This document shows, in pieces, positions 1-22,781 of a stretch of DNA of 64,000 bases; position 1 is the first letter of the stretch, and the number at the start of each line of letters is the position of its first letter. The stretch covers positions 186,001 through 250,000 of the IMG/VR virus record IMGVR_UViG_3300037502_003770; one strand, written 5' to 3'. The notes beneath the pieces were generated by a model. That model was not told where the DNA came from, made no database searches, and saw nothing but the letters and a program-made list of their open reading frames with translations. Both the position numbers and the translations under genes were made by a program.

Positions 1-408
1 ACAATTTTACCTGATATATTTTATCAAATACAAAAAGGTTTAGAACCAACAGATAAAAATATTTTAAGACCTATATTTCATGGTTATAGTAAACATAAAT
101 GGTTTAAAGCTTTATATGGTTATAGTGCAAATATACAAAAAGCTTTAACTAGAAATTCATTTAAAAAAATATATTATGAACAGTTTTTACAACCTAATTT
201 AGATAAAATAACTCTTTCTCAAGAATTTAAATCTAATTTAGAAAAATATTATTTAAGTGAAGAATACTCATTTATGGAAGTATCAAAAATAAGAATAAAA
301 GAAAATGATGTATGGAAAAAAGTAGATAATGACGAACCATATTCATTTAGTGAATTTAGTTATATAGATTATATAGAAGAATGGAAGAAATTGCAAATAA
401 AAAATTAA
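1..408 (+). CDS. Hypothetical protein, 5'-truncated by the window edge
   Basis: Frame 1 is open from base 1 (TILPDIFYQ...) to TAA at 406-408, overlapping the terminase start; not in the ORF track because it lacks a start in the window. Confidence 0.65.
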   Translation, partial: TILPDIFYQIQKGLEPTDKNILRPIFHGYSKHKWFKALYGYSANIQKALTRNSFKKIYYEQFLQPNLDKITLSQEFKSNLEKYYLSEEYSFMEVSKIRIKENDVWKKVDNDEPYSFSEFSYIDYIEEWKKLQIKN

Positions 409-2123
409 CAAAAGCTCAGATTACTGAAGAATTTATAAAAATTTCTTTGGATATAGAATATTTCGCTTTAAATTATTGTAAAGTAAAAGATAAAGCTAAA
501 GGTGTTATAGGTCCTTTTAAAGTTATGCCTACACAAAAAAAGGTTTTAAAAGCTTATATGGAAAATGATTATGTAGGTGTTTTAAAATATAGGCAAGGAG
601 GTATTACAACAGTAACTATTTTATATGTGTGTTGGTTAATTTGTACTCAAAATGATTTAAAAATTGCTATTGTTGCTGATAAACTTAAATTATCAATAAC
701 AGATATTGTAATGCCAATACATAATATGTTAATGGATTTACCAGAGTGGCTTAGACCCACTTTATCAATCGATAGACAAGAGTTAAAACAATATAGTAAT
801 GGATGTGTGCTAAAAGCAGTTGCAGCTTCTAAAGACGGTTTAAGAGGTATGTCTCCTGATTATTTAATAATTGATGAAGCAGCTTATTTACAATATGGTG
901 AAGCATTTTGGACATCAGCATCAGGTACATTATCTGTCGCAGGGAAATGTATTATGATTTCAACACCTAATGGTCAAGACCCTGTTTATTTTGCTCAATA
1001 TGAAGCATCAAGAATAGGTGAAAGCGGATTTCATTTTGTGGAAATTAAATGGTATGAAGATATAAGATTTAATAAAGGGTTAGTTTGGAAACAAGGTAAT
1101 GAAATTATGGTTGAAGGTGAGGAAGCATTAGATGAAACAAAATTTAATGAATATATACAACTAGGTTATAAAGCTTCTTCTCCTTGGTATGTTACTATGT
1201 GTAAAACTTATTTTGGTGATAAAAAACGTATTGCTCAAGAAATTGAAAATAGTTTTATTGGTTCAGGTGGTGCAATGATACATGATGAAGATTTAATTAG
1301 ACATGAAAGAATTGCAAAAACTTTTCCATTTAGAGAATTAAATAGAGAACCGAATTTATGGATTTTTGAAGACCCTATTCCAACAGAAGATTATGTATTA
1401 TCAGCTGACGTTGCATCTGGAGGAGAAGATTATTCAACTTTTCAGATAGTTAGAATAGATAAAGTTTCAGGAAAATTAATTCAAGTTGCAGAATATCAAA
1501 ATAAAGTAAAAAATGATGTTTTAGCTCCAACTGTTTTTGAATTTGGTAGATTATATAATTTTGCTTATCTTGTTGTCGATGTTACAGGTTCACATGGTTT
1601 ACCTTTAGTTGAAAGATTAATAGAATTAAAATATCCTAACCTTCATTATAGTGATTATTCAACATCAGCTATTTCTGAAAGAATAGAAGGTTTAGAAAGT
1701 TTTGATGGTAAAAAACCTGGTTTTATTGTAGGGGGTGGTCAAATTAGACAATTAATATTGGCTAAATTTGAAGAAATGGTAAGACTTGATACTTTACAAA
1801 TTAGGTCAGTTAGATTAATTTCAGAAATGAAAACATTTGTATGGATGCCTTCAAAAAATAGATATGACCACACAAGAACTAAACACGATGACTTATTATT
1901 TGCTATGGCAATAGCTTGTTATGTTGTTGAATATTCTATTATTAAAAGTAAAAATAATAAAGAAGGTGTTAAAAATATGTTGGATAGTTGGACTTTTGTT
2001 AGACAAGACGATATATATAGTAATAAGTGGATGAATCAAGATTCTTTTAATGAACAAAATATTAAAAAAGGAATTGATAGTGGTAGAAATAATAATTTAC
2101 CTGACCCATTCTTCTTTTTATAA
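381..2123 (+). CDS. terL: Terminase large subunit (T4 gp17-like)
   Basis: Walker A-like VLKYRQGGITT, Walker B YLIIDEAA, coupling motif ISTPNG, RNase H-like nuclease motifs SADVASG and HDDLLFA. Confidence 0.95.
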   Translation: MEEIANKKLTKAQITEEFIKISLDIEYFALNYCKVKDKAKGVIGPFKVMPTQKKVLKAYMENDYVGVLKYRQGGITTVTILYVCWLICTQNDLKIAIVADKLKLSITDIVMPIHNMLMDLPEWLRPTLSIDRQELKQYSNGCVLKAVAASKDGLRGMSPDYLIIDEAAYLQYGEAFWTSASGTLSVAGKCIMISTPNGQDPVYFAQYEASRIGESGFHFVEIKWYEDIRFNKGLVWKQGNEIMVEGEEALDETKFNEYIQLGYKASSPWYVTMCKTYFGDKKRIAQEIENSFIGSGGAMIHDEDLIRHERIAKTFPFRELNREPNLWIFEDPIPTEDYVLSADVASGGEDYSTFQIVRIDKVSGKLIQVAEYQNKVKNDVLAPTVFEFGRLYNFAYLVVDVTGSHGLPLVERLIELKYPNLHYSDYSTSAISERIEGLESFDGKKPGFIVGGGQIRQLILAKFEEMVRLDTLQIRSVRLISEMKTFVWMPSKNRYDHTRTKHDDLLFAMAIACYVVEYSIIKSKNNKEGVKNMLDSWTFVRQDDIYSNKWMNQDSFNEQNIKKGIDSGRNNNLPDPFFFL

Positions 2124-2130
2124 ATAATTT

Positions 2131-2137
2131 CTATTTA
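2131..2137 (+). promoter_or_regulatory. CTATTTA putative late promoter
   Basis: Exact heptamer 19 nt before ATG 2157; same motif recurs upstream of most virion genes. Confidence 0.6.
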
Positions 2138-2156
2138 AAAGAAAGAAGAATTTTTA

Positions 2157-3188
2157 ATGAAAAATTACGATAAGTTAAGTGATAATGAACATAAAATAGA
2201 TTTAATTTCTTTAAATGAATTTTTACTTGAGAAAGGAGATTCTTTTTTAAATAGAATAATTGAAACTCAAACAATAAAAAGAGAAGAAATTACAAAGGAA
2301 TTTTTTCAAGATAGATATGTATGGATATTTAAAGGAATTAAAGACCGTAGTGATTTTAATGGTGAAGATTTTCCATCAGAATGGTATACAGAAGGTATTA
2401 TAAATGGAATTATAAGAAGATTTGTTGATTATACTGAGTATGGTAGAATTAGTGAACATAAATTTTTATTATGTTTAAATTCAAAAATTCAAAATTATTA
2501 TTCTCTTTGCGAAAAAGCAGTTGATGATAATCCATTTAATATAGTATTAGTTGCTGAACGTGCTATTGATTATTCTCTTTGCGAAAAAGCAGTTAATGGA
2601 TATCCTAATGTTATAATAAGCATTATACCCGAAAAATTTAAAACATATTCATTATGGGAACTAGCTATTAGTAAAAATGGTTATTTATTAAAGGAAATAC
2701 CAAAAAATTTAATTGATTATTCTCTTTGTGAAAAAGCTATTAAAAATGATGTTGAAGCTTTACAGTTTGTACCAAAAAATATTGAGAATTATTATGATTT
2801 AGTAAAATTAACTTTTGAAAAGTCGAGTTATATAGTTGAAGCAGACTGGTTTCCAAAAGAATATATTTTGAAATTAATAAATGATGAGGATTACCCAAGT
2901 CGTAAAGAATATTTAACAAAACAATACTATTTAAAAGAAAATAACAACATGACAAAAAAAGATTTATTAATCGAGTTCATAAAAAAAGAAATAGCTAGAG
3001 TTTTAACCGAAGCAAAAAAATCAAAGAAAAAAGTTGGTCCCACAGGAAAAAAACTTATTAAAAGAAAAGATGGTTCTTATTCAGAAGAAGGTCTTTACGA
3101 TAATATCCGCAAAAACAAAGGTTCAGGAAAGAAACCAACCGCACAAATGAAAGCTCAAGAAAAGAAAATTAAAAAAGCAGAAAAATAA
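2157..3188 (+). CDS. DUF4116-like repeat protein (paralog family), in-frame fused to a basic C-terminal module
   Basis: N-cap IDLISLNEFLLEKGD, ~24-aa repeats IDYSLCEKAV...[IV]P, C-cap WFPKEYI; C-terminal 79 aa start at an internal ATG (2949). Confidence 0.75.
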   Translation: MKNYDKLSDNEHKIDLISLNEFLLEKGDSFLNRIIETQTIKREEITKEFFQDRYVWIFKGIKDRSDFNGEDFPSEWYTEGIINGIIRRFVDYTEYGRISEHKFLLCLNSKIQNYYSLCEKAVDDNPFNIVLVAERAIDYSLCEKAVNGYPNVIISIIPEKFKTYSLWELAISKNGYLLKEIPKNLIDYSLCEKAIKNDVEALQFVPKNIENYYDLVKLTFEKSSYIVEADWFPKEYILKLINDEDYPSRKEYLTKQYYLKENNNMTKKDLLIEFIKKEIARVLTEAKKSKKKVGPTGKKLIKRKDGSYSEEGLYDNIRKNKGSGKKPTAQMKAQEKKIKKAEK

Positions 3189-3189
3189 T

Positions 3190-3414
3190 ATGAAAAAATT
3201 ATTAGATATTTTATTTATTGGAAATATTGTATTAACATTAAAAAGAAATGTTAAACTTGGTATACCAAAAATTTCTTTATGGTTTATACTACCTTTAATA
3301 TTAATAGGATTATTTACTGTTGGAGTTGTATTTTCAGCTAGAATAATCCTATCTATTATATCATTAAGTGTATTTGTTTTTGGTTTATTTTATAATATTC
3401 GTTATATAAAATAA
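3190..3414 (+). CDS. Small membrane protein (two predicted TM segments)
   Basis: Hydrophobic stretches ISLWFILPLILIGLFTVGVVF and IILSIISLSVFVFGLFY; starts immediately after the upstream stop. Confidence 0.55.
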   Translation: MKKLLDILFIGNIVLTLKRNVKLGIPKISLWFILPLILIGLFTVGVVFSARIILSIISLSVFVFGLFYNIRYIK

Positions 3415-3415
3415 A

Positions 3416-3610
3416 TTACATCCATAAAGATTTACGATTCCAAAGATTTTTAAATAATCGAACCAAAGATGAGTTGACAATATTTTCAAACTCATCTTTG
3501 GTTTTTTTAGTCCCTATTTGTTTAGAAACTTCATCTTCAATCATTTTTTTATATGTATCTTTTATTTCAGATTTAATTTTATCTAACTCTTTTTTTGATA
3601 ATTCTGCCAT
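3416..3610 (-). CDS. Hypothetical protein downstream of portal
   Basis: Start overlaps the portal stop (TAATG at 3608-3612); charged helical 64-aa product. Confidence 0.65.
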   Translation of the reverse strand: MAELSKKELDKIKSEIKDTYKKMIEDEVSKQIGTKKTKDEFENIVNSSLVRLFKNLWNRKSLWM

Positions 3611-6015
3611 TATGTTATTCTTTTATTTAAAGTTTCATTTATTTTAAGTTTATTTAATTCTCTGAAAAAGATTTCATTCAAATTTTGGTTTTTATCTTCA
3701 GGTTCATTTTCTTGATTAGGAAGATTGTTTTGGTCAGGACCACCTAAACCTAAATCACCACCTCCGCCAGCAGGATTATTTAAATCAGGTGTACCACCTA
3801 AACCTAAATCACCGCCTCCAGTATCACCAAAACCTCCTGCACCACCGAAATCACCTCCAAGAGAAGCGCCTCCACCGAAGCCACCACCTCCACCAAAATC
3901 ACCCATACCCATATCACCGCCTTGTGGTTGTTGACCTTGAGTTTGGGTACTTGGTTTAATATCAAAACCAGCATTTTGGTATTTAATATATTTATCCATT
4001 AATTTAGATGATTTAATTAACATTGGTGCAGACTTTACTTCTTCACCTATTTTAGATTCAATAAATTGGTCCAAAATATCATCTAAAATATCTTCTTCCG
4101 ACATACCAAGTATTTCTTTTTTAGCTTTTGTTGTTGACATTGGCGCTAAACCATTAGCCCCTTGTTGTGTTGCTGAATTATATGCTGTTAATTTTTCATT
4201 CATATTAGCAATTTTCAACATTTCAGCTTGAGATGATGGGTTTTGCATTGTAATTGTAAAATTATCAATATTTTCTAAGAAATCCCCTCCCTTCAAAAAA
4301 AGATGTATAATTGCAATTTTATTTAATTCTGAAATTAAAGATTGTTGTATTCTATTAATTTTTCTTGCAAACCTTATGTCTAATATAGAAAGGTTTGTTC
4401 CACCCTTTTCCATAGAACCATCCGATGAAAACGCAAGAAATATTTTAGGAATACCTAAACCTGTAAATAATAAATCCCTGAAGTAAGAAACATCCATGAT
4501 TGCATCAAGATTTGAGTTTTGTGTAAATATTCCACAAGATAGTAAAAAGTTATGATAATCATGTTCTTCTTCATTACCATCGATTGTAAGTGTACCAGTA
4601 TCAATTTTATAATCTAAATCCTCAACTGAAATAACAGAAATATTTATTTCTTTATTAAAACTCCATAATGATTCATTAACTTCTAAATCTTTAGCTTCTT
4701 TAATACCATTAAATTTAGTTGGGAATTTATGGTCAGGTGTAGTAATAATTGTTTCACTATTATCTAAAGTAATTTTTACTACATCAGTATTTTTTCTTGT
4801 TACAGCAGCATTAGTAATTTTACCTGGTACTATTTCACCAGTTTCAGGATTAATACTATAAGTCCATAATTGTTTAGTTTTATCAGAATTAAATTCATCT
4901 ATAATTTCAGATAACATTAAACTTCTACCATCTAATAAATCTATTTTAGTATCTAAAGCTAGACAAGCACCAGGAAGAGTTTCTATTGGAGATGAAGCGT
5001 TATCACTTCTTGTTGGAATAAAAATATCTTCATCATTTGTTGCAACGTGATACTTCCAGTTATAATCACCAGTTTTAGGGTCAATTAATGGTTTTTTCTT
5101 TACTTTATTTGCAACCATTTGAACATAAGAACCTATATCTTCTGTAGGAATATTTCCAACATTTACTTTATAAATCCTTCTTTCAGCGGCTCTAGTAATT
5201 CTATATACTAACATAGAATCTTCCATCATACTAAGTATTCTCCAAATTCTTCTTACTTTATCTAAAACAGACATACCATAAGGCATCCTTCTATCATCAC
5301 CAAGTAATCTAAAGTGTGCTATTTGCCAGTGAGTAAATTGACTACTATCAATACCACCTTCAGTCATTTTATTTCTAAAATAAATATTAATATCTTCATT
5401 ACCATTACTATCTCTTTTAGTTTCTTCAACTCTTTCAATATTAATATTTGGTAATTGTTTTGCACCTGTTACACCTTCTTTATCATTTAAATTTAAATAA
5501 ACAAAATTATCGCCATATTTACACATGTTTCTTGCCCAGAATTGCAATGTAGTATTAACATCCAATACTTTATAAAAAAGATATTCTAATTCTTGTTTAA
5601 CTCTTTTATTATCAGAATAAATATTAATTACTTTACCATTATCGCCAATAGTTGTAGCTTCTTCTGATAATAAATCTAATGCAGAACCAATTATAGGATA
5701 TGATTCCATTAATTCAAAATCATAATATTGCATAATTCTATTAGATTCATAAGCTAATGAATTATTTCTATCTACTTTAATTAAGCTTTTATATTGATTA
5801 TCAAAAAATACACTTTGTTGATATGTTTTAACTTTTAATTCTAATTCTTCTTTTGTTTTAGCAATTATTTTATCTTTATCAACATCTACTTCATTTTGGT
5901 TTATTTTATTACCATTAATATCTTCTATATTTTTATTAACATATGAGGTACTACTAATGTTAGTAGGAAAAAGTAAATCACCTAATCTGTTAAATATCGT
6001 CTTGTTATTAGCCAT
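3610..6015 (-). CDS. Portal protein (T4 gp20-like), intein-containing, Gly-rich C-terminal tail
   Basis: gp20-like motifs QIAHFRLLGD, PYGMSVL, EDSMLVYRITRAAERRIYKVNVGN, EDIFIP, IETLPGA, GIPKIFL, DIRFARKINRIQ. Confidence 0.93.
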   Translation of the reverse strand: MANNKTIFNRLGDLLFPTNISSTSYVNKNIEDINGNKINQNEVDVDKDKIIAKTKEELELKVKTYQQSVFFDNQYKSLIKVDRNNSLAYESNRIMQYYDFELMESYPIIGSALDLLSEEATTIGDNGKVINIYSDNKRVKQELEYLFYKVLDVNTTLQFWARNMCKYGDNFVYLNLNDKEGVTGAKQLPNINIERVEETKRDSNGNEDINIYFRNKMTEGGIDSSQFTHWQIAHFRLLGDDRRMPYGMSVLDKVRRIWRILSMMEDSMLVYRITRAAERRIYKVNVGNIPTEDIGSYVQMVANKVKKKPLIDPKTGDYNWKYHVATNDEDIFIPTRSDNASSPIETLPGACLALDTKIDLLDGRSLMLSEIIDEFNSDKTKQLWTYSINPETGEIVPGKITNAAVTRKNTDVVKITLDNSETIITTPDHKFPTKFNGIKEAKDLEVNESLWSFNKEINISVISVEDLDYKIDTGTLTIDGNEEEHDYHNFLLSCGIFTQNSNLDAIMDVSYFRDLLFTGLGIPKIFLAFSSDGSMEKGGTNLSILDIRFARKINRIQQSLISELNKIAIIHLFLKGGDFLENIDNFTITMQNPSSQAEMLKIANMNEKLTAYNSATQQGANGLAPMSTTKAKKEILGMSEEDILDDILDQFIESKIGEEVKSAPMLIKSSKLMDKYIKYQNAGFDIKPSTQTQGQQPQGGDMGMGDFGGGGGFGGGASLGGDFGGAGGFGDTGGGDLGLGGTPDLNNPAGGGGDLGLGGPDQNNLPNQENEPEDKNQNLNEIFFRELNKLKINETLNKRIT
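4516..4965 (-). mobile_element. Mini-intein (150 aa, no homing endonuclease) in portal
   Basis: Begins CLALDTKI (Cys1, aa 351), block B TTPDHKF, block F/G HNFLLSCGIFTQN followed by Ser+1; inserted at LPGA|SNL. Confidence 0.92.
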
Positions 6016-6049
6016 AAATTTTTTATTATCAAATAATACTTATATTATA

Positions 6050-6056
6050 TAAATAG
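6050..6056 (-). promoter_or_regulatory. CTATTTA putative late promoter for portal
   Basis: TAAATAG on + strand, 34 nt upstream of the portal ATG; divergent copy at 6101-6107 serves ORF 6127. Confidence 0.6.
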
Positions 6057-6126
6057 TATTGTTAAAAATAACTATCTTTTTCTTAAATAGTAATTTCTTA
6101 CTATTTAGTAAAAACATTATTCTATA

Positions 6127-7398
6127 ATGAAATTTATTTATATAAAGAAAGAATTATCACCAAAAATATTTAATAACCAAAAAAATGTTAAAGCTATTAT
6201 AAGAAAGAAACTTATTGATTTAGCATATATGTATTTGAGAAACTATAATTTAAAAGATATAAAGGTTTTAGATATTAGAATGGTTGGTAGTTTATGTAAT
6301 TATAACTATAACGCTTCATCTGATTTAGATTTACATATAACAGTTGATTATAGTAAAATTTCTGATAATAAAGAGTTTGTTCTTGAATATTGTAAGACTT
6401 TAAGGAAGAATTGGTCTCAAAATAATAGAATTAAAATATACGGATTTCCTGTTGAAATCTTTATTGAAGATAAAAGTGTACCAATGAATGATAAAGGTGT
6501 ATATTCTTTATTAAAAAATAAATGGTTAAATGAACCAAAAAAAGTTTCAAGAGAAAAAATTAATTTAGATGATATAAAATCTTTATATATAAAATATAAA
6601 AGAACAATTAGAGATTTACTTAAAAGTGATGATATTAATGAATATAATAAATTTTCCGATGAATTAGGTTCTTTTAGAAAAAAAGGGTTATCTTCAGAAA
6701 AAGGTGAATATTCTGATGAAAATATTGTTTTTAAGTTATTAAGAAAATATAAAAAATTAGATTTAGTTACAAATAGAAAGAATAATCTTTTAAGAAGAAA
6801 ATATACTCTTAAAGAAGGTATTTTTAAAAAAGTAAAAAAACATTTAAAAGAAAGTGTTGTTTCATTAAATGGAAAATATAACTTAAAAAATATTACTAAA
6901 ATAAATACAAAAAATAATATAGATTTAGATTCTTTAAATAATTTTTTACTTGGGGAAGGTGATGATTTTTTAAATTTTTTATTAATGGTAAATGATTATA
7001 AAAAAAGGGATTATTCAAATAATAAAATACAAGAATATTATTTACGTGAAGCTTATTTTAAACCTTTACACCATACGTATCCTGAAGAATTATGGATGTA
7101 TTATTCATTTTGTGAAAGAGGTGTATCTATAAATGGTATGTGTTTAAAATATATACCTGAACAATTAAAAGATTATAATTTATGTAAAAAAGCTATTATT
7201 TCAGCACCTTTTGCATTAAATTATACACCTAAAACAATTGAAAATTATTATGAATTAGTAAAAATTGTTATGAGAGATTTAATTAAATTTAAAATGTACC
7301 GTAGAAGTATTATGTATAATTACGGTATAAGTGATGAATATATACCTCAATTAAAAAAAGATTTTCCTGAATATTTTAATCATGAAGATTATTCTTAA
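6127..7398 (+). CDS. Pol-beta-superfamily nucleotidyltransferase fused to a DUF4116-like repeat module
   Basis: MVGSLCNYNYNASSDLDLHI (GS...DxD) and third acidic residue in PVEIFIED; C-terminal third has IDLDSLNNFLLGEGD cap, KDYNLCKKAI repeats and EYIPQLKKDFP cap. Confidence 0.8.
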   Translation: MKFIYIKKELSPKIFNNQKNVKAIIRKKLIDLAYMYLRNYNLKDIKVLDIRMVGSLCNYNYNASSDLDLHITVDYSKISDNKEFVLEYCKTLRKNWSQNNRIKIYGFPVEIFIEDKSVPMNDKGVYSLLKNKWLNEPKKVSREKINLDDIKSLYIKYKRTIRDLLKSDDINEYNKFSDELGSFRKKGLSSEKGEYSDENIVFKLLRKYKKLDLVTNRKNNLLRRKYTLKEGIFKKVKKHLKESVVSLNGKYNLKNITKINTKNNIDLDSLNNFLLGEGDDFLNFLLMVNDYKKRDYSNNKIQEYYLREAYFKPLHHTYPEELWMYYSFCERGVSINGMCLKYIPEQLKDYNLCKKAIISAPFALNYTPKTIENYYELVKIVMRDLIKFKMYRRSIMYNYGISDEYIPQLKKDFPEYFNHEDYS

Positions 7399-7426
7399 AT
7401 AAAACTATTTAAATTAAAAGAATTAT

Positions 7427-8329
7427 ATGTCATTAGGTACAACTGGTATAGTAAAATCATCTACTGTAGATGTAAAAGATATTGAAATATTATATAGTTA
7501 TTCAGTTGATAGAACTGATAGTAATACAGTATTTACTAAAGTAGCGGATAGTTCTTCTTTTATAAGTAACATTTTTAGTCAAGATATAACAACTGAAAAA
7601 ATTCAAGGGTTATATCAATTAAAATTATCAAAAGATATTTTTAATAAAGTAGGAATTTATAATATATTAATTAGACCTAAGCAAATAAAACTCCCTATTT
7701 TAGATATAGGTATATTATCAGCTTTACCAAATGTAAAGGGTATAATTATTGATACAAATAATGAATTATTTATTAATGATGCTGAAAAATTATTATCAGG
7801 AGCTTTAACAGGTTATAGAATTGAATATATAAATACAGATAATTCTATTCAGTCAAATTTATTTAGAACGGTAACTTATTCTAATAGATGTGAACCTATT
7901 ATACAGAATCTACCTAATACAACAAATAAATCTGTTTCTTATAGATTAAATGATAATAGTGGATTACTTTTTTTAACAGTAACACCTTCTGTTAGTTCAT
8001 CTATTAAACCAAATTCAGAAATATTTATAGGTACACCAAATCAAAATATTATATTATCAAATACATTTTTTGACCCTTTATTTATTGAAATAGAGTTAAC
8101 AGAATATGATTTAGATACACTTGCTTTAGCTTTCTATGGTGAACAAACAAGAAGTACTCAAGACGGTGTAGTTACATATTATGATAAAGATAGAAATATT
8201 TATAAACAATTTACATTGTTTGAAATTAAAGATGAAAATAATACACCTTTATATGAAGTAAAAGAAGTTATTACTGATATAGATGAATCTAAATCATATG
8301 AAGCTATAACAAATGATATTATTAGGTAA
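7427..8329 (+). CDS. Hypothetical protein, probably virion-associated
   Basis: 300-aa ORF with CTATTTA at 7405-7411; beta-rich composition; no catalytic motif recognised. Confidence 0.7.
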   Translation: MSLGTTGIVKSSTVDVKDIEILYSYSVDRTDSNTVFTKVADSSSFISNIFSQDITTEKIQGLYQLKLSKDIFNKVGIYNILIRPKQIKLPILDIGILSALPNVKGIIIDTNNELFINDAEKLLSGALTGYRIEYINTDNSIQSNLFRTVTYSNRCEPIIQNLPNTTNKSVSYRLNDNSGLLFLTVTPSVSSSIKPNSEIFIGTPNQNIILSNTFFDPLFIEIELTEYDLDTLALAFYGEQTRSTQDGVVTYYDKDRNIYKQFTLFEIKDENNTPLYEVKEVITDIDESKSYEAITNDIIR

Positions 8330-9093
8330 TGAATAAATTACAAGAAAAAAGTGATGCACATAAAATAGATTTAGAATTGTTAAATAACTTCTTACTTGAG
8401 AAAGGGGATAATATGTTAGAGATGTTATTAATACGAAAATATATAATTCCTTTAGATTTAAAAAAAATAAAAATATATCTATCAATAGATGGTTGGTTAT
8501 TACAAGATATACCAGAAAAACATAAGACATATGAATTATGCAAAATAGCAGTCACTAAAACAGGAAATGCTATTTTGCACGTTCCTGAAAATTTAATAGA
8601 TTATAATCTTTGTGAAATAGCGGTTTTACAAAATGGGCGTTCATTAGATTACGTGCCTTATAAATTTAAAGATTATAATCTTTGTGAGAAAGCTGTTTCT
8701 AATTATGGTCATGCTATACAATATGTACCAAAAGAATTAATTGACTATTTTCTTTGTGAGAAAGCGGTTTCTACTCATGGTCAATCTTTAATGTATATTC
8801 CTAAAAAATTTATTGATTATCCGCTTTGTGAGAAAGCGGTTTCTAATGATGGTTGGGCTTTTCAACATGTACCAGAAAAATTTATAGATTACTCTTTAGT
8901 GAAATCTACTTATCAATATAGTATAGAAGCAATAAAACAAAACTGGTTTCCAAAGGAATATATACCTCAGTTAATAAAAGACTTCCCTGAACATAGAGAA
9001 TTTTTAGAAAACAGTTTACTTCAAGAATATATTTCCAAAGAAGTAAGAAAATTATTAAAAGAAACACTATTTACTAAAAAGAAATTATTATAA
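8329..9093 (+). CDS. DUF4116-like repeat protein (paralog family)
   Basis: N-cap IDLELLNNFLLEKGD, five clear 24-aa repeats (e.g. IDYPLCEKAVSNDGWAFQHVPEKF), C-cap WFPKEYIPQLIKDFP...EYISKEVRKLLKE. Confidence 0.8.
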   Translation: MNKLQEKSDAHKIDLELLNNFLLEKGDNMLEMLLIRKYIIPLDLKKIKIYLSIDGWLLQDIPEKHKTYELCKIAVTKTGNAILHVPENLIDYNLCEIAVLQNGRSLDYVPYKFKDYNLCEKAVSNYGHAIQYVPKELIDYFLCEKAVSTHGQSLMYIPKKFIDYPLCEKAVSNDGWAFQHVPEKFIDYSLVKSTYQYSIEAIKQNWFPKEYIPQLIKDFPEHREFLENSLLQEYISKEVRKLLKETLFTKKKLL

Positions 9094-9887
9094 TGGACAA
9101 AAATAAACTAATAGAACTGGTACAACAAATATATGGTTATTCAAAAATCATTGGTGAATCATTAAAAAACATTGGCGATGATGTAAGTAATTTACCTATT
9201 GATTTGGAGAATGATTTAAATTCTATTGTTTATCAATTAAAAGATTATAAAGAACAAATAGTAAAAAATCTATATGGTAGTAAATTAAATGAACTAGCAA
9301 AAAAGAAAAAAACTACCACACCTGTAGAAAAAGGTCCAGATATTGTAACAAAAGATAGACAACAAAATAAAGAAAGAACTAAACCTGTTCCTTTAACAGA
9401 TGAACAACTTAAAAAATATAAAATAGAGCTACAAAAATTTATTAACCAAAATACAAACGATATTGCTTCTTTAAAAGATATTTTTGATGATATATTTCTT
9501 ATATATGAAAGATACTCTAGTACAGAAAGTGATAAAATAGAAAATAATATTGATTTAAAAATAAACTATGTTAATCAGTTATTAACTTTAACAAATAATG
9601 CTATTGATATAATAAAAAGTTTAAAAAGTAAAAATAATGTATGTTTTTATTTATTCATGTATGATATATTAACTGATTCTTCAAATGATGATTCAACCTT
9701 TAAATTTAATGAATTTCTTTTCGCAATAAAATCTTTCTATAATAATTTAATTGCTCAAGATTTTTTTGAAAATAATAGAAAAATATATTCTGAATATAAA
9801 ATAATAAACTATAACGATTTCTTAGTTGCTCTTGAAAATTCTATTAATAGATTTGCAAACTTTAATGATTTAGATAATCGTTTTTAA
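9093..9887 (+). CDS. Hypothetical protein
   Basis: 264-aa helical ORF; CTATTTA at 9067-9073 inside the upstream gene's 3' end. Confidence 0.7.
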   Translation: MDKNKLIELVQQIYGYSKIIGESLKNIGDDVSNLPIDLENDLNSIVYQLKDYKEQIVKNLYGSKLNELAKKKKTTTPVEKGPDIVTKDRQQNKERTKPVPLTDEQLKKYKIELQKFINQNTNDIASLKDIFDDIFLIYERYSSTESDKIENNIDLKINYVNQLLTLTNNAIDIIKSLKSKNNVCFYLFMYDILTDSSNDDSTFKFNEFLFAIKSFYNNLIAQDFFENNRKIYSEYKIINYNDFLVALENSINRFANFNDLDNRF

Positions 9888-9914
9888 CAACTTTTCATTA
9901 ATAGTATGATATTT

Positions 9915-11117
9915 CTATCTTTTTGGTGTTAAAACCAATGGATTTACTACAAAACCCTCTACCCCATTTGTAAATACATTTGGGATTGCCTTTCTTAATA
10001 TATTATAAGAACCGTTAACATCAGCGTTTATTAACTTTCCTTCTTTTCCTTTTATTTTATATAATCCTCTACTTTTTCTATAACCACTAAAAGAATATTC
10101 TTCTTTACAATTTGGTTTGTATGTTGGTATATAATCTAAATTTAAAAAAGAAGCTTTACTGGTATAACTTTCTTCTTGAAGGATTACATCTATACCTTCC
10201 ATTTTACATTTATATTTTAACATTTCAATAAATGTATTATGCGGTATAAATTGAAAATTTTGATTACTTACTTTACCCATACTTGTGTCTTGTTTCCAAT
10301 TACAATTTTTACCTATAATTAATAGATAAACATTATTATTAACTAAATGATTCACTAGTAATTTACTACTTTTATGTAAATAATCTTTTATTTTATTGTT
10401 TCTTTTATTTGTTAATTTAATAGATTTTTTAGTTGTTTTATTTCCTATTAATTTACTTTTAGATTTATTATAATATTGATTTATAGATTTTAATGGTTTA
10501 CCGTTTATTATTATTGGTTTATATTCTTTTTTATTATATGTTATTGTTGCTAAATTATTTATACCAAGGTCTATTGACGCTATTAAATCTGATTTTATAT
10601 TATTTTTTTCTTTTTTTTCATAAACAACTTCTATTACATAATATTTATTTTTCGGTATTATACGAACTTCTTTTATTAATTTCCAATCTTTGATTTTAGT
10701 TTTTATTTTAATTTCACTTTTTGATAGTTTTATTAAACCAGTTTTTTTAAATTCTCTATATTCTAAAGCTTGAATACAGTACTTTACCATAAATCTTCCA
10801 TTTTTTTTATTTAAATATTTAGGTATTTTATTTTTAACATCTTTATTTTTAAGTAATTTAAAAAAAGATTTAAAATTTTTGTCTAATATTTTTATAACTT
10901 TACATGAAACTTTTGCTGGTAAACTCTTATATTCGTCTGTATTTTTTAATAAATGATAGTTTTTAAGTTCATTTAAATATTTATTATTTTCAAAAAAATA
11001 TTGTCTTATATTATATAAACCTTGATTATATAAATTTTTAGATAAAAAACATAGATTATCACATGTATTATAGTATTTATTATTTTCTTTAATTACATGT
11101 TGTTCTACTAGTATCAT
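9915..11117 (-). CDS. tnpB: TnpB RNA-guided nuclease, rearranged-RuvC type
   Basis: RuvC-I SIDLGINN, RuvC-II position has IIGKN (Gly for Glu), alternative Glu in QEESYTS ~46 aa later, RuvC-III INADVNGSYNI; no CxxC zinc finger; no tnpA nearby. Confidence 0.9.
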   Translation of the reverse strand: MILVEQHVIKENNKYYNTCDNLCFLSKNLYNQGLYNIRQYFFENNKYLNELKNYHLLKNTDEYKSLPAKVSCKVIKILDKNFKSFFKLLKNKDVKNKIPKYLNKKNGRFMVKYCIQALEYREFKKTGLIKLSKSEIKIKTKIKDWKLIKEVRIIPKNKYYVIEVVYEKKEKNNIKSDLIASIDLGINNLATITYNKKEYKPIIINGKPLKSINQYYNKSKSKLIGNKTTKKSIKLTNKRNNKIKDYLHKSSKLLVNHLVNNNVYLLIIGKNCNWKQDTSMGKVSNQNFQFIPHNTFIEMLKYKCKMEGIDVILQEESYTSKASFLNLDYIPTYKPNCKEEYSFSGYRKSRGLYKIKGKEGKLINADVNGSYNILRKAIPNVFTNGVEGFVVNPLVLTPKR

Positions 11118-11126
11118 TTATTAATA

Positions 11127-11174
11127 TTTTTATATTATTAAATAGTGTATTATTACTATTTAATAATATAAAAA
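11127..11174. repeat. Perfect 20-bp inverted repeat with 8-nt loop containing two opposed CTATTTA motifs
   Basis: 11127-11146 pairs base-for-base with 11155-11174. Confidence 0.9.
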
Positions 11175-11201
11175 ATATACTAGGACTGTTTATGTACGGT
11201 T

Positions 11202-11230
11202 AAAACGATTTCTTTTTAAGGAATCGTTTT
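11202..11230. terminator. Hairpin, possible intrinsic terminator
   Basis: AAAACGATT ... AATCGTTTT stem followed by a T-rich run. Confidence 0.45.
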
Positions 11231-11266
11231 CTTTTTAAAAATTATCTATTTAAATAAAAGAATTAT

Positions 11267-12058
11267 ATGTTAAATAATTTACAAGAAAAAAGTGATTTAA
11301 AACAAATAGATTTAGAATCTTTAAATAATTTTTTGCTTGAGAAAGGGGATAGTTTTTGTGATACTTTACTTCAAATAAAATCATATAAAAAAATTGATTA
11401 TTCATCAGATAATATACAAAAATATTATTATACATTAAAATTTAAGGATGTTAATTCTTTTCCAAAACAATTATGGTATCATGATTCTTTTTGTGAAAAA
11501 ATGTTGGGTAGAGACAGCGGAAATATAAAACTTATACCTAAAACTTCAAATAATTATTATAATTTTTGTAAAATGGCTGTTACTCATAATCCATTTAATA
11601 TAAAACATATTGATTCAGAGTTTATTGATTATAATCTTTGTAAGATTGCAGTATCAAATATTTATACAACTTTAAATTTAATACCAAAAAAATTTATTGA
11701 TTATAATCTTTGTAAGATTGCAGTATCAAATAATTATAGTAATTTACAGTATGTACCTAAAAATATTGAAAATTACTACCTTATTTGTTTATTAGCTGTA
11801 TATAAAAAGGGTTCAGCTTTAGAATTTGTCCCCAAAAATATAGATAAATATTACACAATATTAAAATTAGCTTTTGAAACTTATAGATATATAATTATAC
11901 AAGATTGGTTCCCAAAAGAATATATACCTCGATTAATAAAAGACTTTCCTGAAGATAAAGAATTTCTTGAGCGATATATTCTTAAAGAATATATTTCCAA
12001 AGAAGTAAAGAAATTTTTAAAAGAATACCTATTTAAAGAAAAATTATATGTTAAATAA
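11267..12058 (+). CDS. DUF4116-like repeat protein (paralog family)
   Basis: N-cap IDLESLNNFLLEKGD, repeats IDYNLCKIAVSN, C-cap WFPKEYIPRLIKDFP...LKEYISKEVKKFLKE; CTATTTA at 11246-11252. Confidence 0.8.
   Translation: MLNNLQEKSDLKQIDLESLNNFLLEKGDSFCDTLLQIKSYKKIDYSSDNIQKYYYTLKFKDVNSFPKQLWYHDSFCEKMLGRDSGNIKLIPKTSNNYYNFCKMAVTHNPFNIKHIDSEFIDYNLCKIAVSNIYTTLNLIPKKFIDYNLCKIAVSNNYSNLQYVPKNIENYYLICLLAVYKKGSALEFVPKNIDKYYTILKLAFETYRYIIIQDWFPKEYIPRLIKDFPEDKEFLERYILKEYISKEVKKFLKEYLFKEKLYVK
11621..11732 (+). repeat. Exact 40-bp direct repeat, period 72 bp
   Basis: tttattgattataatctttgtaagattgcagtatcaaata at 11621-11660 and 11693-11732. Confidence 0.9.
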
Positions 12059-12659
12059 TTTTGACAAACTATCTAATAATAATCATAATATTGATTTAAT
12101 CTCTTTAAATAAATTCTTACTTGAAAAAGGTGATAATTTTTTAGAAAATCTTATTGATAATAATAAATTTATAAAAAAAGAAGATATAACAAAAGAGTTT
12201 TTTCAAAAGAAATATCGAACAATATTTGATGGTATATTTAGTGTTGATGATAGTTTTTCTTTCACAGGAGAAGATTTTCCTGTTGAGTATTATAATGAAA
12301 AAATAATAAAAAATCTTGTTGAAGAATATAATAAGTTTGGTAAATATTTATTATTTTTAAATTCAAAATTAGATATATATTTTCAATTAGCTAAATATAC
12401 TATTACAACTAAGGCTTCTTGGATGTTAATATACATACCTAAAACAATAGAAAATTATTATTCTTTAGTAAAACTTGCATTTGAAAAAGATAATAATATA
12501 ATTAGAGAAGAATGGTTCCCAAAAGAATACATTCCTAAATTAATAAATGATTACCCTCAAAATACTGATTTTTTAAAGAAATATTTACTTAAAGAATATA
12601 TTTCCAAAGAAGTAAGAAAATTTTTAAAAGAATACTATTTAAATAAAAATAAACAATAA
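12048..12659 (+). CDS. DUF4116-like family paralog with few repeats
   Basis: IDLISLNKFLLEKGD and WFPKEYIPKLINDYP...LKEYISKEVRKFLKE caps; N-half closely resembles ORF 2157; CTATTTA at 12029-12035. Confidence 0.8.
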   Translation: MLNNFDKLSNNNHNIDLISLNKFLLEKGDNFLENLIDNNKFIKKEDITKEFFQKKYRTIFDGIFSVDDSFSFTGEDFPVEYYNEKIIKNLVEEYNKFGKYLLFLNSKLDIYFQLAKYTITTKASWMLIYIPKTIENYYSLVKLAFEKDNNIIREEWFPKEYIPKLINDYPQNTDFLKKYLLKEYISKEVRKFLKEYYLNKNKQ

Positions 12660-12673
12660 CAAAATATAATAAT

Positions 12674-13777
12674 ATGAAAAAATTATTAACAGAAGCAACA
12701 TTCAAACGATTAATAAAGACTTTTATTAATGAAGATATTAGTAAAGTTAAAAATGGTAAATTACTAAACTGGATTAAAACATTTAATCAAAAAGCTAACA
12801 CTAATTATGATGAAAATGAATTAGCAAATATTGTAATTGAATTTTCAGAACTTCAAGGTAAGGGCGGTTTAAAAATAAATAATACACCTGTTGATATTTT
12901 ATCTGTTAGAACTGATGAACAATTAAAACAAGTTATTGATGCTCTTCAAGCTGTTAGAAAAAAACAAGAATTAAAAAATCAAATTAAAGGTATGTCTGGT
13001 CAAAGAAGAACTACTACCCTTAAATTTAATGGTAGTTTTAAAGGTTTACCTAGTAAAGAAAAATTTCAATTGTTAAAACAGTATTGTGAAAAACCTTCTG
13101 ATTTATTTCCTGATAAAAAATATGTACCAATTCCAACTAACGAATTTAAATATATTGAAGATGCTTTCCAAACAAATGCTGATAGAGGTGCTTTAACAGC
13201 TTATGCTGTTTGGTATGTATTAATTTGTTTTAAAGGTTATAAAAGAGCTGAAGATGCTTCTATTATTAAAAAATTTATTGATATTTATAATGAATATAAA
13301 GCTCAATATCCTTTAGAAATTACAAAGATAAATACAAAACAAGAATTTGATGAATTTTATAATATTTCAGCAAAAATAAATAGTGAAAAATCTTCTGGTA
13401 ATATTTCAACATCTGGTTATGTTACTGAAATGGTTTCAAAATATCCTCAATTTTATAAAGGAGATTTTAGTGACCAAAAATACGGTCAAACATATGTTTA
13501 TTTTCAATTACCAAAAATAACAAAAGACCAAGTACAAGAATATGTTCCAGTTTTTAGAGATTTAGGTATGTGGACAACTTGGTGTGTGTCTGCTGGCTGG
13601 GATGATGAAGGTAAAACCGCAAGTGCAGATAATGTTGAGCGTTACGCCACTCAAGATATATTCAGTATTTTAATAAATAAAGCCGACCCAAAAAATTCTG
13701 TTAATGGTAAATTTGCTCTTAATTCTGCTGATAAAGATTTAAGAAATATTTCAGACCAAGGTGTTTTTGGTGGTTAA
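12674..13777 (+). CDS. Hypothetical protein, possible head-packaged protein
   Basis: N-terminus MKKLLTEATFKRLIKTFINED with [LI]xE motifs; CTATTTA at 12635-12641. Confidence 0.7.
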   Translation: MKKLLTEATFKRLIKTFINEDISKVKNGKLLNWIKTFNQKANTNYDENELANIVIEFSELQGKGGLKINNTPVDILSVRTDEQLKQVIDALQAVRKKQELKNQIKGMSGQRRTTTLKFNGSFKGLPSKEKFQLLKQYCEKPSDLFPDKKYVPIPTNEFKYIEDAFQTNADRGALTAYAVWYVLICFKGYKRAEDASIIKKFIDIYNEYKAQYPLEITKINTKQEFDEFYNISAKINSEKSSGNISTSGYVTEMVSKYPQFYKGDFSDQKYGQTYVYFQLPKITKDQVQEYVPVFRDLGMWTTWCVSAGWDDEGKTASADNVERYATQDIFSILINKADPKNSVNGKFALNSADKDLRNISDQGVFGG

Positions 13778-13811
13778 TAACTTTTTATTAATTATCTTTC
13801 TTTTTAAAATT

Positions 13812-13841
13812 GACTTCCTTTAATAAGGAGGTCTTTTTTTT
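13812..13841 (+). terminator. Intrinsic terminator
   Basis: GACTTCCTT-TAAT-AAGGAGGTC stem (one G-U) followed by T8. Confidence 0.75.
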
Positions 13842-13850
13842 GAAAGAATA

Positions 13851-13857
13851 CTATTTA
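13851..13857 (+). promoter_or_regulatory. CTATTTA putative late promoter for prohead protease
   Basis: 16 nt before ATG 13874, directly after a terminator. Confidence 0.65.
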
Positions 13858-13873
13858 AAATAAAAATAATATA

Positions 13874-14542
13874 ATGAGAAAATTAACATTATTAGAAGCG
13901 AATCAAGAAGGTTATGGATTATTAAAAGAATCTGATGCTGGTATTGTAGAAATAGAAAGAAATCAACACTTAATAAAAGAAAATTATAAGGACATGTTTT
14001 CTGATAATGGTAGTATATTTGTTAATTGTATTTTACAAAAAGCTGATACTCAAAATAGAAATGGTAGGATTTATCCAAAAAATATATTAGAAAAAGAAGT
14101 AAATAATTATATAAAATTAGTTAAAGAAAGAGCTTCACTTGGTGAAACCGACCACCCTGATACTGCTGTAGTTTCTTTAAATGACCCATCTCATTTAATA
14201 ACAAAAGTTTGGTGGGAAGGAAATACATTATTAGGGACATTAGAATTAATAACATCACCAGCATATATAGAAAGAAGAGATATTCAAGTTAAGGGTGATA
14301 TGATTGCAAATTTATTAAGTAAAGAAATTAAATTAGGCATTTCTTCAAGAGGTTTAGGTTCAGTAAAAAAAGTAAATGGTGCAAATATAGTACAAAGTGA
14401 TTTTGAATTAGTTTGTTTTGATATAGTATCATCACCATCAACTCCTGGTGCTTATTTATATCAAGAAACTATTAAACTTAATGAACAAGTAAATAAAATT
14501 AATAATAGTTTAAATAATAAATTAAAAAACTTTTTATCATAA
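13874..14542 (+). CDS. Prohead core protease (T4 gp21-like)
   Basis: QKADTQNRNGRIYP, LGETDHP (catalytic His), GISSRGLGS (catalytic Ser), FDIVSSPSTPGAY. Confidence 0.93.
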   Translation: MRKLTLLEANQEGYGLLKESDAGIVEIERNQHLIKENYKDMFSDNGSIFVNCILQKADTQNRNGRIYPKNILEKEVNNYIKLVKERASLGETDHPDTAVVSLNDPSHLITKVWWEGNTLLGTLELITSPAYIERRDIQVKGDMIANLLSKEIKLGISSRGLGSVKKVNGANIVQSDFELVCFDIVSSPSTPGAYLYQETIKLNEQVNKINNSLNNKLKNFLS

Positions 14543-14545
14543 AAA

Positions 14546-15730
14546 ATGATTACAATAAAAAGACTTAGTGAAGTAGAAAATTATAAAAAAGAAATAAGTA
14601 TTTTTTTATTAAAAGAAGAATCACCTGTTGTTGGGGATAAAAGACTTACAGGTAATGCAATATTACAATTTATAAAACCAATATATGATGCAAATAATTC
14701 TATTGTTTTATTAGATAATGAAAAAATAGTTGGTTGTTTAATAGGTGCAAAAGGTAATCAAACTTCACTTAAATCATATGGTTTAGATAATCAATTTAAT
14801 GTAGAAAATGAATTAAAAAATAATACTTTTATTGATTTTTTATATTTTTATATTGAAAAAGAATACAGAAAAGATAGGAATGATTATAAAATGTGTTTAT
14901 ACGCTTTTAATAATATTGTTAAAGGGAAATATAAATATATTACTATTGGTGTCGTTGATTCTATTAATACACATAATTATTGGCAGAAATTTTTTAAATT
15001 TAAATTATTATTTGATTTAGGTGGTGCAAAATATTATTACTTAGATACAGATACAATTTTAAAAGAATTTAAAATTCATAATAAAAATATTCTTTTAGAA
15101 AATAAAATTAGAACTTTAGTAAAAGAGTATATTAACCCTTATATGTTAAAGTCAAAATATCTTTCTCCTAAAGATGAAGATAAACCTTATCAAATAACAG
15201 ATAAAGAAAGAAATATTATTTCTAAATGGAGTGAACGTTCTTATAATAGAAATGGTATTAATGTTAGTTTTTATAATATTAATAAAGAAACTTTAAATTT
15301 AAATATTAGTAAAATTCCTATTTCTGCAAAAATTATTAAAGATAATAATACAAAAACAATGCAGTTTGCTGTTACTTATTCTTGTATTATTAATAATGAA
15401 AAAGAAGCTTTAATTACAGTAAGAAGTACAACTAAAAAAAGATTTAATGATAAAACAAAAATAACTTTTGTTTTATATGATAATTTTTTACTTACACCTA
15501 ATCCTGAATTAATTTTAATAAGTAAACCATATAGTAAATCAGGTAATAGTCGTCATAAATCTGATTTAATTAGTTTAATTAAAAATACAAGGGATTATTT
15601 ATCTAAAAGAATTAATAATATGTTAGAAAAGGGTAAATTATTACAACACCCTTTTACTAAAGAAGGAATTGATTTAGATGAATTTGATGATTTTTTTAAT
15701 ATAGACCTTTCAAATTACCATATTTCTTAA
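14546..15730 (+). CDS. Hypothetical protein with GNAT-like N-terminal domain
   Basis: KIVGCLIG...FLYFYIEKEYRK...NTHNYWQKF resembles the GNAT strand/motif A/motif B order; divergent. Confidence 0.5.
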   Translation: MITIKRLSEVENYKKEISIFLLKEESPVVGDKRLTGNAILQFIKPIYDANNSIVLLDNEKIVGCLIGAKGNQTSLKSYGLDNQFNVENELKNNTFIDFLYFYIEKEYRKDRNDYKMCLYAFNNIVKGKYKYITIGVVDSINTHNYWQKFFKFKLLFDLGGAKYYYLDTDTILKEFKIHNKNILLENKIRTLVKEYINPYMLKSKYLSPKDEDKPYQITDKERNIISKWSERSYNRNGINVSFYNINKETLNLNISKIPISAKIIKDNNTKTMQFAVTYSCIINNEKEALITVRSTTKKRFNDKTKITFVLYDNFLLTPNPELILISKPYSKSGNSRHKSDLISLIKNTRDYLSKRINNMLEKGKLLQHPFTKEGIDLDEFDDFFNIDLSNYHIS

Positions 15731-15759
15731 AATAAATACTATTTATAAATAAAATAAAA

Positions 15760-17208: not shown

Positions 17209-17251
17209 ATTAAAATTTTAGTAAATTATTGGAAAATTAAAAAATAATTTA

Positions 17252-17258
17252 CTATTTA
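17252..17258 (+). promoter_or_regulatory. CTATTTA putative late promoter for major capsid protein
   Basis: 25 nt before ATG 17284. Confidence 0.65.
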
Positions 17259-17283
17259 AAATAAAAATTAATAAAATTAAAAT

Positions 17284-19053: not shown

Positions 19054-19078
19054 TCTATTAAAATAGGTTATTAAAACA

Positions 19079-19104
19079 AAAGGGTACTTTTTTAAGTACC
19101 CTTT
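19079..19104. terminator. Bidirectional terminator between convergent capsid and nuclease genes
   Basis: AAAGGGTACTT-TTTT-AAGTACCCTTT stem-loop. Confidence 0.75.
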
Positions 19105-22364: not shown

Positions 22365-22781
22365 TTACCAACGCTTACATAATTTATATTCTTCTATAAT
22401 TCTTTGTTTTAAATCAGAAGGTACAAAATTAATAAGGTCCTCATGAAATGGATAGTTGTCAAAATTAATTTTACAAATTTCATAATCTATGAAAGAATCG
22501 GGAACAAAATCAATACAAAAAATAGAATTTTTTACTAGTGTTTTATAAAAAATACGATTAATTTTAGTAGTATTAAATTGTAACATTGAAAAACTTATTG
22601 CTGAAATAATATAGTTATCTGATTTTGATAATGTTGTAAGCGTATTAAAATACATTGAAATAAAGTTTTTACAAACATTTATATTATCTATAATTTTTGT
22701 TCCGACTGGAAGGTTGAGTCTATCAAAATCAAAATATGTTTCCACATAAAAGAAATTATCATTAAATATATTTATTCTCAT
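22365..22781 (-). CDS. Small paralog-array protein
   Basis: MRINIFNDNFFYVE; C-terminal FVPDSFIDYEICK resembles a DUF4116-like repeat. Confidence 0.65.
   Translation of the reverse strand: MRINIFNDNFFYVETYFDFDRLNLPVGTKIIDNINVCKNFISMYFNTLTTLSKSDNYIISAISFSMLQFNTTKINRIFYKTLVKNSIFCIDFVPDSFIDYEICKINFDNYPFHEDLINFVPSDLKQRIIEEYKLCKRW

Follow-up and report, generated by a model that had tools for sequence, protein, structure and literature searches.

We analyzed a 64,000-nucleotide stretch of DNA (hereafter, the window), comprising bases 186,001 to 250,000 of the 312,694-bp IMG/VR virus record IMGVR_UViG_3300037502_003770. In this window, genes for a family of repeat proteins are interleaved with head genes, as an earlier note on this DNA had described; the genes concerned encode the terminase, portal, prohead protease, and major head protein. 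The record has a G+C content of 22% and a CheckV completeness estimate of 96%. Judged from its gene content, it is the genome of an uncultivated T4-like jumbo phage: the large terminase is T4-like, the portal, gp21-type prohead protease, and major head protein match T4-type PHROGs, and the tail sheath and baseplate hub genes are located further on in the genome. The ortholog of the prohead protease in relatives carries a Peptidase_S77 annotation. The phage DNA was near-complete in one subsurface metagenome run, and parts of it were present in aquatic, freshwater, and wastewater runs.

The five open reading frames (ORFs) assigned to the family in the earlier note, here w2157, w6127, w8329, w11267, and w12048, were all found on the + strand (Table 1). 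All five share the N-cap IDLxxLNxFLLxxGD and the C-cap (WFPK)EYIPxLIxD(F/Y)P, and between the caps stand repeated units with a period of strictly 24 residues in the window members. Unit counts bore out the proposed range of one to five, with four plus a cap unit in w2157, two in w6127, five in w8329, four to five in w11267, and one in w12048. The variability proposed for the residues after the AV dipeptide was likewise confirmed by positional entropy over 52 units collected genome-wide. Unit positions Y2, C5, A8, V9, L16, V19, and P20 are near-fixed, and positions 3, 10, 11, 14, 15, and 17 reach entropies of 2.5–3.75 bits. The C-cap opens with a degenerate unit, NYYxLVKLAFE, and is followed by a conserved tail helix, LLKEYISKEVRKLLKE, in which the amino acids are kept and the third codon positions vary (identity 0.80 vs. 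0.88). The exact 40-bp repeat at 11621 and 11693, which falls within the units of w11267, was verified; because the two units concerned are not identical in relatives, this pair appears to have been homogenised in the window.

The resemblance of the unit to DUF4116 held for four of the five ORFs, which scored above the Pfam gathering cut-off of 24.9 bits for PF13475 (w2157, 36.4; w6127, 34.1; w8329, 93.3; w11267, 44.0). For w12048 there was no Pfam match, and its one unit was recognised by the unit hidden Markov model (HMM) of the family itself and by a regular expression. The family had been given as five-membered, which proved too few: cap HMMs combined with Pfam DUF4116 retrieved at least 15 family genes from the 312,694-bp genome, ten of them outside the window at genome positions 6.4–10.5 kb and 156.8–182.2 kb. 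No pseudogenes were seen among the family copies. In w6127, the N-terminal 230 aa match phrog_36119 and show weak matches to Pol-beta-type nucleotidyltransferases; against PDB sequences, this domain resulted in a single weak adenylyltransferase match (E 0.09).

Table 1. Family genes, CTATTTA motifs, and adjoining features (window coordinates).
Feature	Position	Strand	Remark
CTATTTA promoter-like motif	2131–2137	+	26 nt upstream of w2157
w2157, 343 aa	2157–3188	+	N-cap 2196–2240; C-cap 2847–2897
w2157, four units plus cap unit	2493–2858	+	
w2157, internal CTATTTA	2927–2933	+	255 nt ahead of the stop; 25 nt ahead of in-frame ATG 2952
CTATTTA motif	6101–6107	+	upstream of w6127
w6127, 423 aa	6127–7398	+	family module in the C-terminal part
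w6127, tail-like linker	6781–6852	+	precedes the family module
w6127, family module		+	N-cap 6919–6963; two units 7096–7239; C-cap 7330–7368
CTATTTA motif	7405–7411	+	6 nt past the w6127 stop; 22 nt before a 300-aa gene (7427–8329)
w8329, 254 aa	8329–9093	+	N-cap 8365–8409; C-cap 8944–8988; tail 9016–9063; start overlaps the stop of the 300-aa gene (TAATG)
w8329, five regular units	8524–8883	+	
w8329, embedded CTATTTA	9067–9073	+	would serve a 264-aa gene starting at 9093
TnpB-type (IS200/605-like) element	9900–11181	−	between the 264-aa gene and w11267; phrog_506, 2.4e-35
Terminator-like hairpin (11202–11230), then CTATTTA (11246–11252)	11202–11252	+	upstream of w11267
w11267, 263 aa	11267–12058	+	N-cap 11306–11350; units 11552–11917; C-cap 11906–11950
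w11267, embedded CTATTTA	12029–12035	+	would serve w12048
w12048, 203 aa	12048–12659	+	N-cap 12090–12134; C-cap 12513–12557; tail 12585–12632
w12048, single unit plus cap unit	12375–12524	+	
w12048, embedded CTATTTA	12635–12641	+	would serve a 367-aa gene at 12674
Terminator-like hairpin (13812–13833) and CTATTTA (13851–13857)	13812–13857	+	before the prohead protease gene; family slot empty in the window
Prohead protease gene	13874–14542		phrog_207, 8.2e-48

Several unusual family or family-like proteins lie outside the window. A 1659-aa protein (genome 161237–166216; L005:5237–10216) has four N-caps, at residues 6, 274, 536, and 1486, and one clear C-cap, and looks like several fused cassettes; the genes at genome 156837 and 158949 have two modules each. 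A 219-aa protein (genome 160506–161165, − strand; L005:4506–5165) contains no DUF4116 units and carries the tail-helix motif LLKEYIQKQVKSLLKE at both termini, and a protein from another contig, P0032, also begins with the tail-helix motif of the family. Three small ORFs (174, 160, and 188 aa) at genome 102005–104457 match the C-cap profile and have no N-cap, and capless DUF4116-like ORFs are present at genome 62–66 kb. Within the window, a 138-aa ORF (22365–22781, − strand) shows weak DUF4116 and C-cap similarity (E 6e-3 and 7e-4) and may be a degenerate relative of the family.

The helical-repeat fold suggested earlier was recovered in the AlphaFold2 model of w8329, an alpha-solenoid with a predicted local distance difference test (pLDDT) score of 89.5, in which each unit forms a 10-residue and a 6-residue helix and a long terminal helix stands at the end. 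The w12048 model reached a pLDDT of 82, with only 56–65 in its N-cap region; across the models, the N-cap region was less confident than the solenoid (pLDDT 56–80). Going by helical geometry, the variable positions, which fall at the end of helix 1, in the turn, and at the start of helix 2, would line one edge of the solenoid. Foldseek gave no match at E <= 0.001 against the PDB, and the best VIA-align Z score against 48,161 chains was 5.2, with generic solenoids only (pentatricopeptide repeat, ankyrin, and armadillo-like). The predicted DUF4116 proteins of Klosneuvirus, other giant viruses, and some phages matched the models clearly, with E values from 3e-9 to 1e-5 in BFVD and template modelling (TM) scores of 0.56–0.72 for Atlas DUF4116 clusters (best 0.67–0.72).

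The distribution of the caps differs from that of the unit. A profile of the C-cap plus tail matched 32 proteins among 1.84 billion representatives, and pattern scans confirmed no capped family in IMG/VR, metagenome contigs, or genome contigs. As a result, the caps and tail appear to be specific to a small phage clade, whereas the unit is widespread. Additionally, tblastn of w8329 against GenBank phages gave no match, an Atlas query made from the w12048 N-cap and linker gave no usable match, and Pfam found nothing beyond DUF4116 in the long family proteins and their neighbors.

The heptamer CTATTTA was found near the 3′ end of four members, as reported in the earlier note, at 2927 (encoding KQYYL), 9067 (KETLF), 12029 (KEYLF), and 12635 (KEYYL). 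The description of a promoter built into the C-cap held with regard to the embedding in the 3′ coding end, but not with regard to the cap itself, as the motif sits about 17–20 codons past the C-cap, after the tail helix. In the whole genome, 61 of 132 copies (46%) lie 10–45 nt upstream of a predicted same-strand gene start, and 43 of the 61 fall into a peak at 20–29 nt. Seven control heptamers showed 2–11% in the same upstream zone, and the placement of CTATTTA resulted in a binomial p of about 5e-61 relative to the share of positions in such zones. The motif precedes the genes for the portal, protease, major head protein, tail sheath, and baseplate hub, and its extended consensus is tA-CTATTTA-wAwwAAA. 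From this position before structural genes, we infer that CTATTTA would serve as a late promoter.

Of the 61 start-proximal sites, 46 are intergenic and 15 are inside the upstream ORF, ten of them in family genes. The motif is embedded in the last codons of 10 of the 15 family genes, compared with 5 of 416 other genes (Fisher p 1.6e-13). After the last tail codon (GAA), the offset of the motif varies, such that it is read in all three frames (YYL, LF, and AIY). Since the frame of the motif shifts while the tail residues are kept with synonymous variation, the tail appears to be conserved as protein and the motif as DNA. An ending of the form EYYLK... or xLF... recurs in nearly all outside relatives, and in a more distant contig the DNA GAATACTATTTAAAAGAAAAATAATG runs into the next gene. 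Terminator-like hairpins stand directly before two of the motifs (Table 1), and none was found where the motif lies inside a family ORF.

CTATTTA also stands upstream of TnpB-type genes, namely the two phrog_506 genes of the window (9915–11117, − strand; 30501–31736, + strand) and further genes at genome 69747–71057, 76259–77566, and 86891–88204 (−). The three genes of 435–437 aa, which are candidate TnpB-type genes, have identical 49-nt upstream sequences and share CTATTTA with the structural genes. Sigma-70 promoters were considered separately and rejected, with 104 consensus sites against 112 +/- 11 in shuffled sequences.

The window was compared with its collinear relatives L001 and L003 (one JGI contig) and L002 (an ENA sample), the backbone DNA of which is 96–98% identical to it. 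The proteins of neighboring genes are 96–100% identical to those of the relatives. The earlier note had proposed an expanding, shuffling set, and among these backbones we found a chimera, a module swap, gain and loss of cassettes, array replacement, and differing unit numbers; repeat number and sequence are clearly not invariant among close relatives. After the terminase gene, the window has a single family gene, w2157, where the relatives have a pair of 207 and 335 aa. The first 21 codons of w2157 and the DNA upstream match the 207-aa gene of L002, the rest matches the 335-aa gene, and the informative sites switch parent inside an identical stretch that encodes the N-cap, AAAATAGATTTAATTTCTTTAAAT. 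Read from these sites, w2157 is the product of an unequal crossover in the N-cap. w6127 is about 95% identical to its L002 counterpart (468 aa) through the N-terminal domain and falls to the level of paralogs from about 6790–6820, in the linker homologous to the family tail; the L002 gene has a different module of about five units, compared with two in the window.

The slot of w8329 was found in four states, with 0, 254, 325, or 535 aa. L001 and L002 lack the gene. What they have as spacer corresponds to its final 46 nt, in which RKLLKETLF... can still be read, an indication that the gene was deleted there. L010 has a 325-aa member in this slot that is 92% identical to w8329 on the N-cap side and 87% on the C-cap side, with an unrelated array between, and in a fourth contig the occupant is a member of 535 aa. 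In the interval that separates the 367-aa gene from the protease gene, L003 carries a 211-aa member and another contig a 169-aa member; the window and L002 have none. The L003 cassette (P0003) is flanked by a 13-nt direct repeat, AATACTATTTAAA, of which the window and L002 keep one copy, standing in the window before the protease gene. The proposal that an embedded promoter-like motif leaves the downstream gene a promoter with or without the cassette agrees with this arrangement. At the locus at genome 170,198, the member has 226, 253, 255, or 292 aa among relatives, and a pair of alleles with 88% identity is set apart by an insertion of about 1.6 units. Unit number ranges from 3 to 8 at one locus among relatives. 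Even among relatives with 45–60% of residues different, the reading frames of all family copies are open, and the scaffold residues and caps are retained.

L001, L002, and L010 lack the TnpB element at 9900–11181 and show a clean junction at its site; the element marks the same variable region and is not a family member. In the DNA contigs of other runs, the element is missing in one run and present in another, and a contig of run X2 joins 9894 to 11181. Read-derived contigs break or cross-join at family genes and were not used for repeat counts. Mutagenesis by a diversity-generating retroelement was rejected as a source of variation, as no RVT_1 match was obtained in the 312,694-bp genome, whereas the controls matched.

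The divergence of the family genes was compared with that of the backbone. In neighboring backbone genes, synonymous divergence (dS) was 0.08–0.12, and the ratio of non-synonymous to synonymous divergence (dN/dS) was 0.02–0.13. The family genes had dN/dS values of 0.22–1.34 (w11267, 1.34; w2157, 0.50, with a dN of 0.16; w12048, 0.22). For w11267 and its L002 ortholog, 21.5 non-synonymous differences (Nd) were counted against 3.5 synonymous ones (Sd). In w2157, the changes cluster at the positions after AV, and the C-terminal extension is nearly invariant.

We consider it fairly probable that the family genes are recombining cassettes, bounded by late-type promoters, that encode the variable solenoid binding proteins of a lineage-restricted family. 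This reading draws on the observed anatomy, motif position, rearrangements, and raised non-synonymous divergence, and on a predicted fold. Recombination would be the mechanism, and binding would be under diversifying selection. Each cassette would consist of CTATTTA with a short leader, the N-cap, one to eight helix-turn-helix DUF4116 units, a degenerate last unit with the C-cap, the terminal helix, and the next CTATTTA, the last being the motif of the following gene while still inside the cassette ORF. Homology at the DNA level in the N-cap, in the C-cap with the tail, and in the promoter-leader would provide recombination sites, and T4-type phages recombine efficiently. Recombination at these conserved stretches would delete, insert, fuse, or exchange cassettes and replace or homogenise unit arrays. 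The downstream gene would never be without a promoter because the right-hand border of the cassette would itself be a promoter. The products would be variable alpha-solenoid binders made alongside the virion proteins.

Two fusions support the cassette reading. In w2157, the family ORF runs across motif and leader and joins a small basic protein at its ATG; the extension after ATG 2952 has 78 aa, is lysine-rich and very basic, and hardly differs between relatives. In w6127, a gene that carries a tail reads into a family gene, the former start region of which is still recognisable. As a separate observation, the 78-aa extension of w2157 (2927–3188 region) could also be made as a small basic protein of its own.

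Several points weigh against the cassette reading. CTATTTA is not over-represented, with 45 copies in the window against 47.3 +/- 6.8 in shuffles; the count matches chance, and the non-randomness is confined to where the copies are placed. Neither a sigma factor nor an activator that would act on CTATTTA was identified, and no search aimed at homologs of gp55, gp33, and gp45 was made. In w2157, dN and dS are both raised, such that the gene may be an imported diverged allele rather than the result of selection in place. The w8329 indel relative to L001 and L002 has its left junction at a stop codon with microhomology only, involving neither promoter nor cap. The evidence consists of DNA contigs and a predicted fold. 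Additionally, the relatives are metagenome contigs, and some differences could be assembly chimeras across repeats, although L001 and L002 come from different samples and agree.

The arrangement resembles the promoter-early stem-loop (PeSL) cassettes of T4-type phages (Arbiol et al. 2010, PMC2839356; PMC4122927). In both cases, short promoter-bearing repeats flank non-essential ORFs, and recombination explains the indels and replacements between phages about 96% identical. The P0003 cassette has the promoter-bearing 13-nt repeat at both borders, with a single copy at the empty site. Terminator-like hairpins directly precede two of the promoter-like motifs and are lacking where the motif lies inside a family ORF. 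However, PeSLs are sigma-70-like early promoters in intergenic, hyperplastic regions, whereas here CTATTTA with an A-rich tract precedes structural genes, the motif is embedded in the tail-coding sequence of a single protein family, and the slots are in the head-morphogenesis cluster. Furthermore, the coding caps would act here as additional crossover sites, and other events use caps or microhomology.

With other DUF4116 (PF13475) proteins, the family shares the 24-residue unit, the alpha-solenoid, and the occurrence of several copies per large viral genome. Such proteins are expanded in Klosneuvirus and other Mimiviridae, in Marseilleviridae, and in some phages, such as Agrobacterium phage Atu_ph07. 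To our knowledge, no DUF4116 protein has been assigned a function. What sets the present family apart from them is its N-cap, C-cap, and tail. An alpha-solenoid was also predicted for DUF4116 in a modelling paper (PMC8078820). The family is comparable to ankyrin, tetratricopeptide repeat, and leucine-rich repeat effectors in its conserved scaffold, hypervariable surface positions, capping units, and variable unit number; nevertheless, its 24-aa unit is shorter and includes a conserved Cys, and the best PDB match has a Z score of only 5.2.

If the cassette reading is correct, the family provides an example of how a large phage keeps a hypervariable family in an essential, tight cluster without breaking the expression of its neighbors. 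The signal regulating the gene that follows would lie in the coding tail of the cassette, and the conserved protein ends would also serve as recombination sites. Promoter-mediated shuffling of the PeSL type would thereby extend from early intergenic promoters to a late-type motif in coding sequence, and the DUF4116 solenoids abundant in giant viruses would be marked as fast-evolving interaction modules.

Different accounts can be given of what the proteins do. They may be late cytoplasmic, non-virion adaptors or decoys, some fused to enzymes (w6127), with host factors or defence proteins as their binding partners in the assembly and lysis phase, an account we hold to be possible but not probable. 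A solenoid with variable turn positions would suit this role, as would the fusions to other domains (P0027 and P0032), and giant-virus DUF4116 proteins are fused to F-box and kinase domains, as adaptors would be. Nevertheless, nothing separates this account from packaging into the capsid, and it leaves the invariant N-cap and tail helix unexplained.

It is rather unlikely that the family consists of capsid-targeted internal or ejection proteins, a more specific form of the packaging and injection proposed in the earlier note. The N-cap would be a propeptide that directs the proteins to the prohead core and is cut by the gp21-type protease after (L/I)-x-E (FLLE|KGD), and the solenoids would be packaged with the DNA and enter the host as anti-defence binders. 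The precedent is that gp21 cuts after L/I-X-E and that T4 loads diverse proteins via short N-terminal targeting sequences (PMC9026906). Internal proteins I–III (IPI–III) of T4 and the cleaved head and ejection paralogs of phiKZ-like and SPN3US-like phages (PMC9026906) are likewise diverse, fast-evolving late proteins with a common short N-terminal element; a gp21-type protease in the genome and, in giant phages, paralog families are further points in common. The family genes lie between the portal and S77 protease genes, where T4 has its prohead core genes, and share CTATTTA with the structural genes; [LI][LI]E stands at a fixed place in 10 of 13 N-caps. The lower confidence of the N-cap in the models (pLDDT 56–80), its repetition inside multi-module proteins, and a rate of evolution that suits an arms race are also consistent with packaging. 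However, the fold and sequence are unrelated to those of the T4 internal proteins, the likeness being one of position and a three-residue motif. L/I-x-E has only three residues, and each protein of this proteome is expected to contain about three such motifs by chance; moreover, the Glu is missing in three N-caps (LLD, LIS, and LLG-E). The N-cap starts at residue 13–15, unlike the N-terminal position in T4 IPs, and family genes also stand outside the head module (genome 6–10 kb and 156–182 kb). The combined proposal that cassettes are swapped in slots of the head cluster, that the N-cap is an S77-cut targeting propeptide, and that the virions would carry an exchangeable arsenal, shared at the population level, of injected binders directed at host defences is one we regard as quite improbable.

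A Hoc-like role in capsid surface decoration or adhesion, with the conserved ends anchored to the shell and the variable solenoid outward, agrees with the head-module position, the late-type motif, and the conserved termini around a variable middle, but is very unlikely given at least 15 paralogs that would be in competition for identical sites, a single conserved Cys in each unit with no immunoglobulin-like or other known decoration fold, and multi-module members of 500–1659 aa. We give equally little credit to the view that the cassettes are largely neutral or selfish, having spread through promoter and cap repeats that readily recombine, while the individual proteins serve no selected function: the dN/dS of w11267 near 1, the frequent loss with no effect seen on neighbors, and the TnpB element inserted in the same slot fit it, whereas the frames, scaffold residues, and caps kept across relatives 45–60% divergent, the tail conserved as protein with synonymous change, and the failure to see any pseudogene speak against it.

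Other features of the head-gene cluster were recorded as well. An Rfam scan of window positions 1–20000 gave no match. The portal gene (3610–6015, − strand; 801 aa) is interrupted by an intein, and portal orthologs of the same length, 99% identical, are annotated as Portal_T4 + Intein_splicing + Portal_T4. The C-terminus of the portal protein is a Gly-rich tail encoded by imperfect 27-nt repeats (3739–3924). For the major head protein (17284–19053, + strand; 589 aa), the PHROG match spans residues 319–564 only, and the N-terminal 300 aa or so have no match. Directly after the major head protein gene, at 19092–20615 on the − strand, one ORF encodes both a Mom-like DNA modification domain (phrog_1384) and a homing-endonuclease domain (phrog_314).

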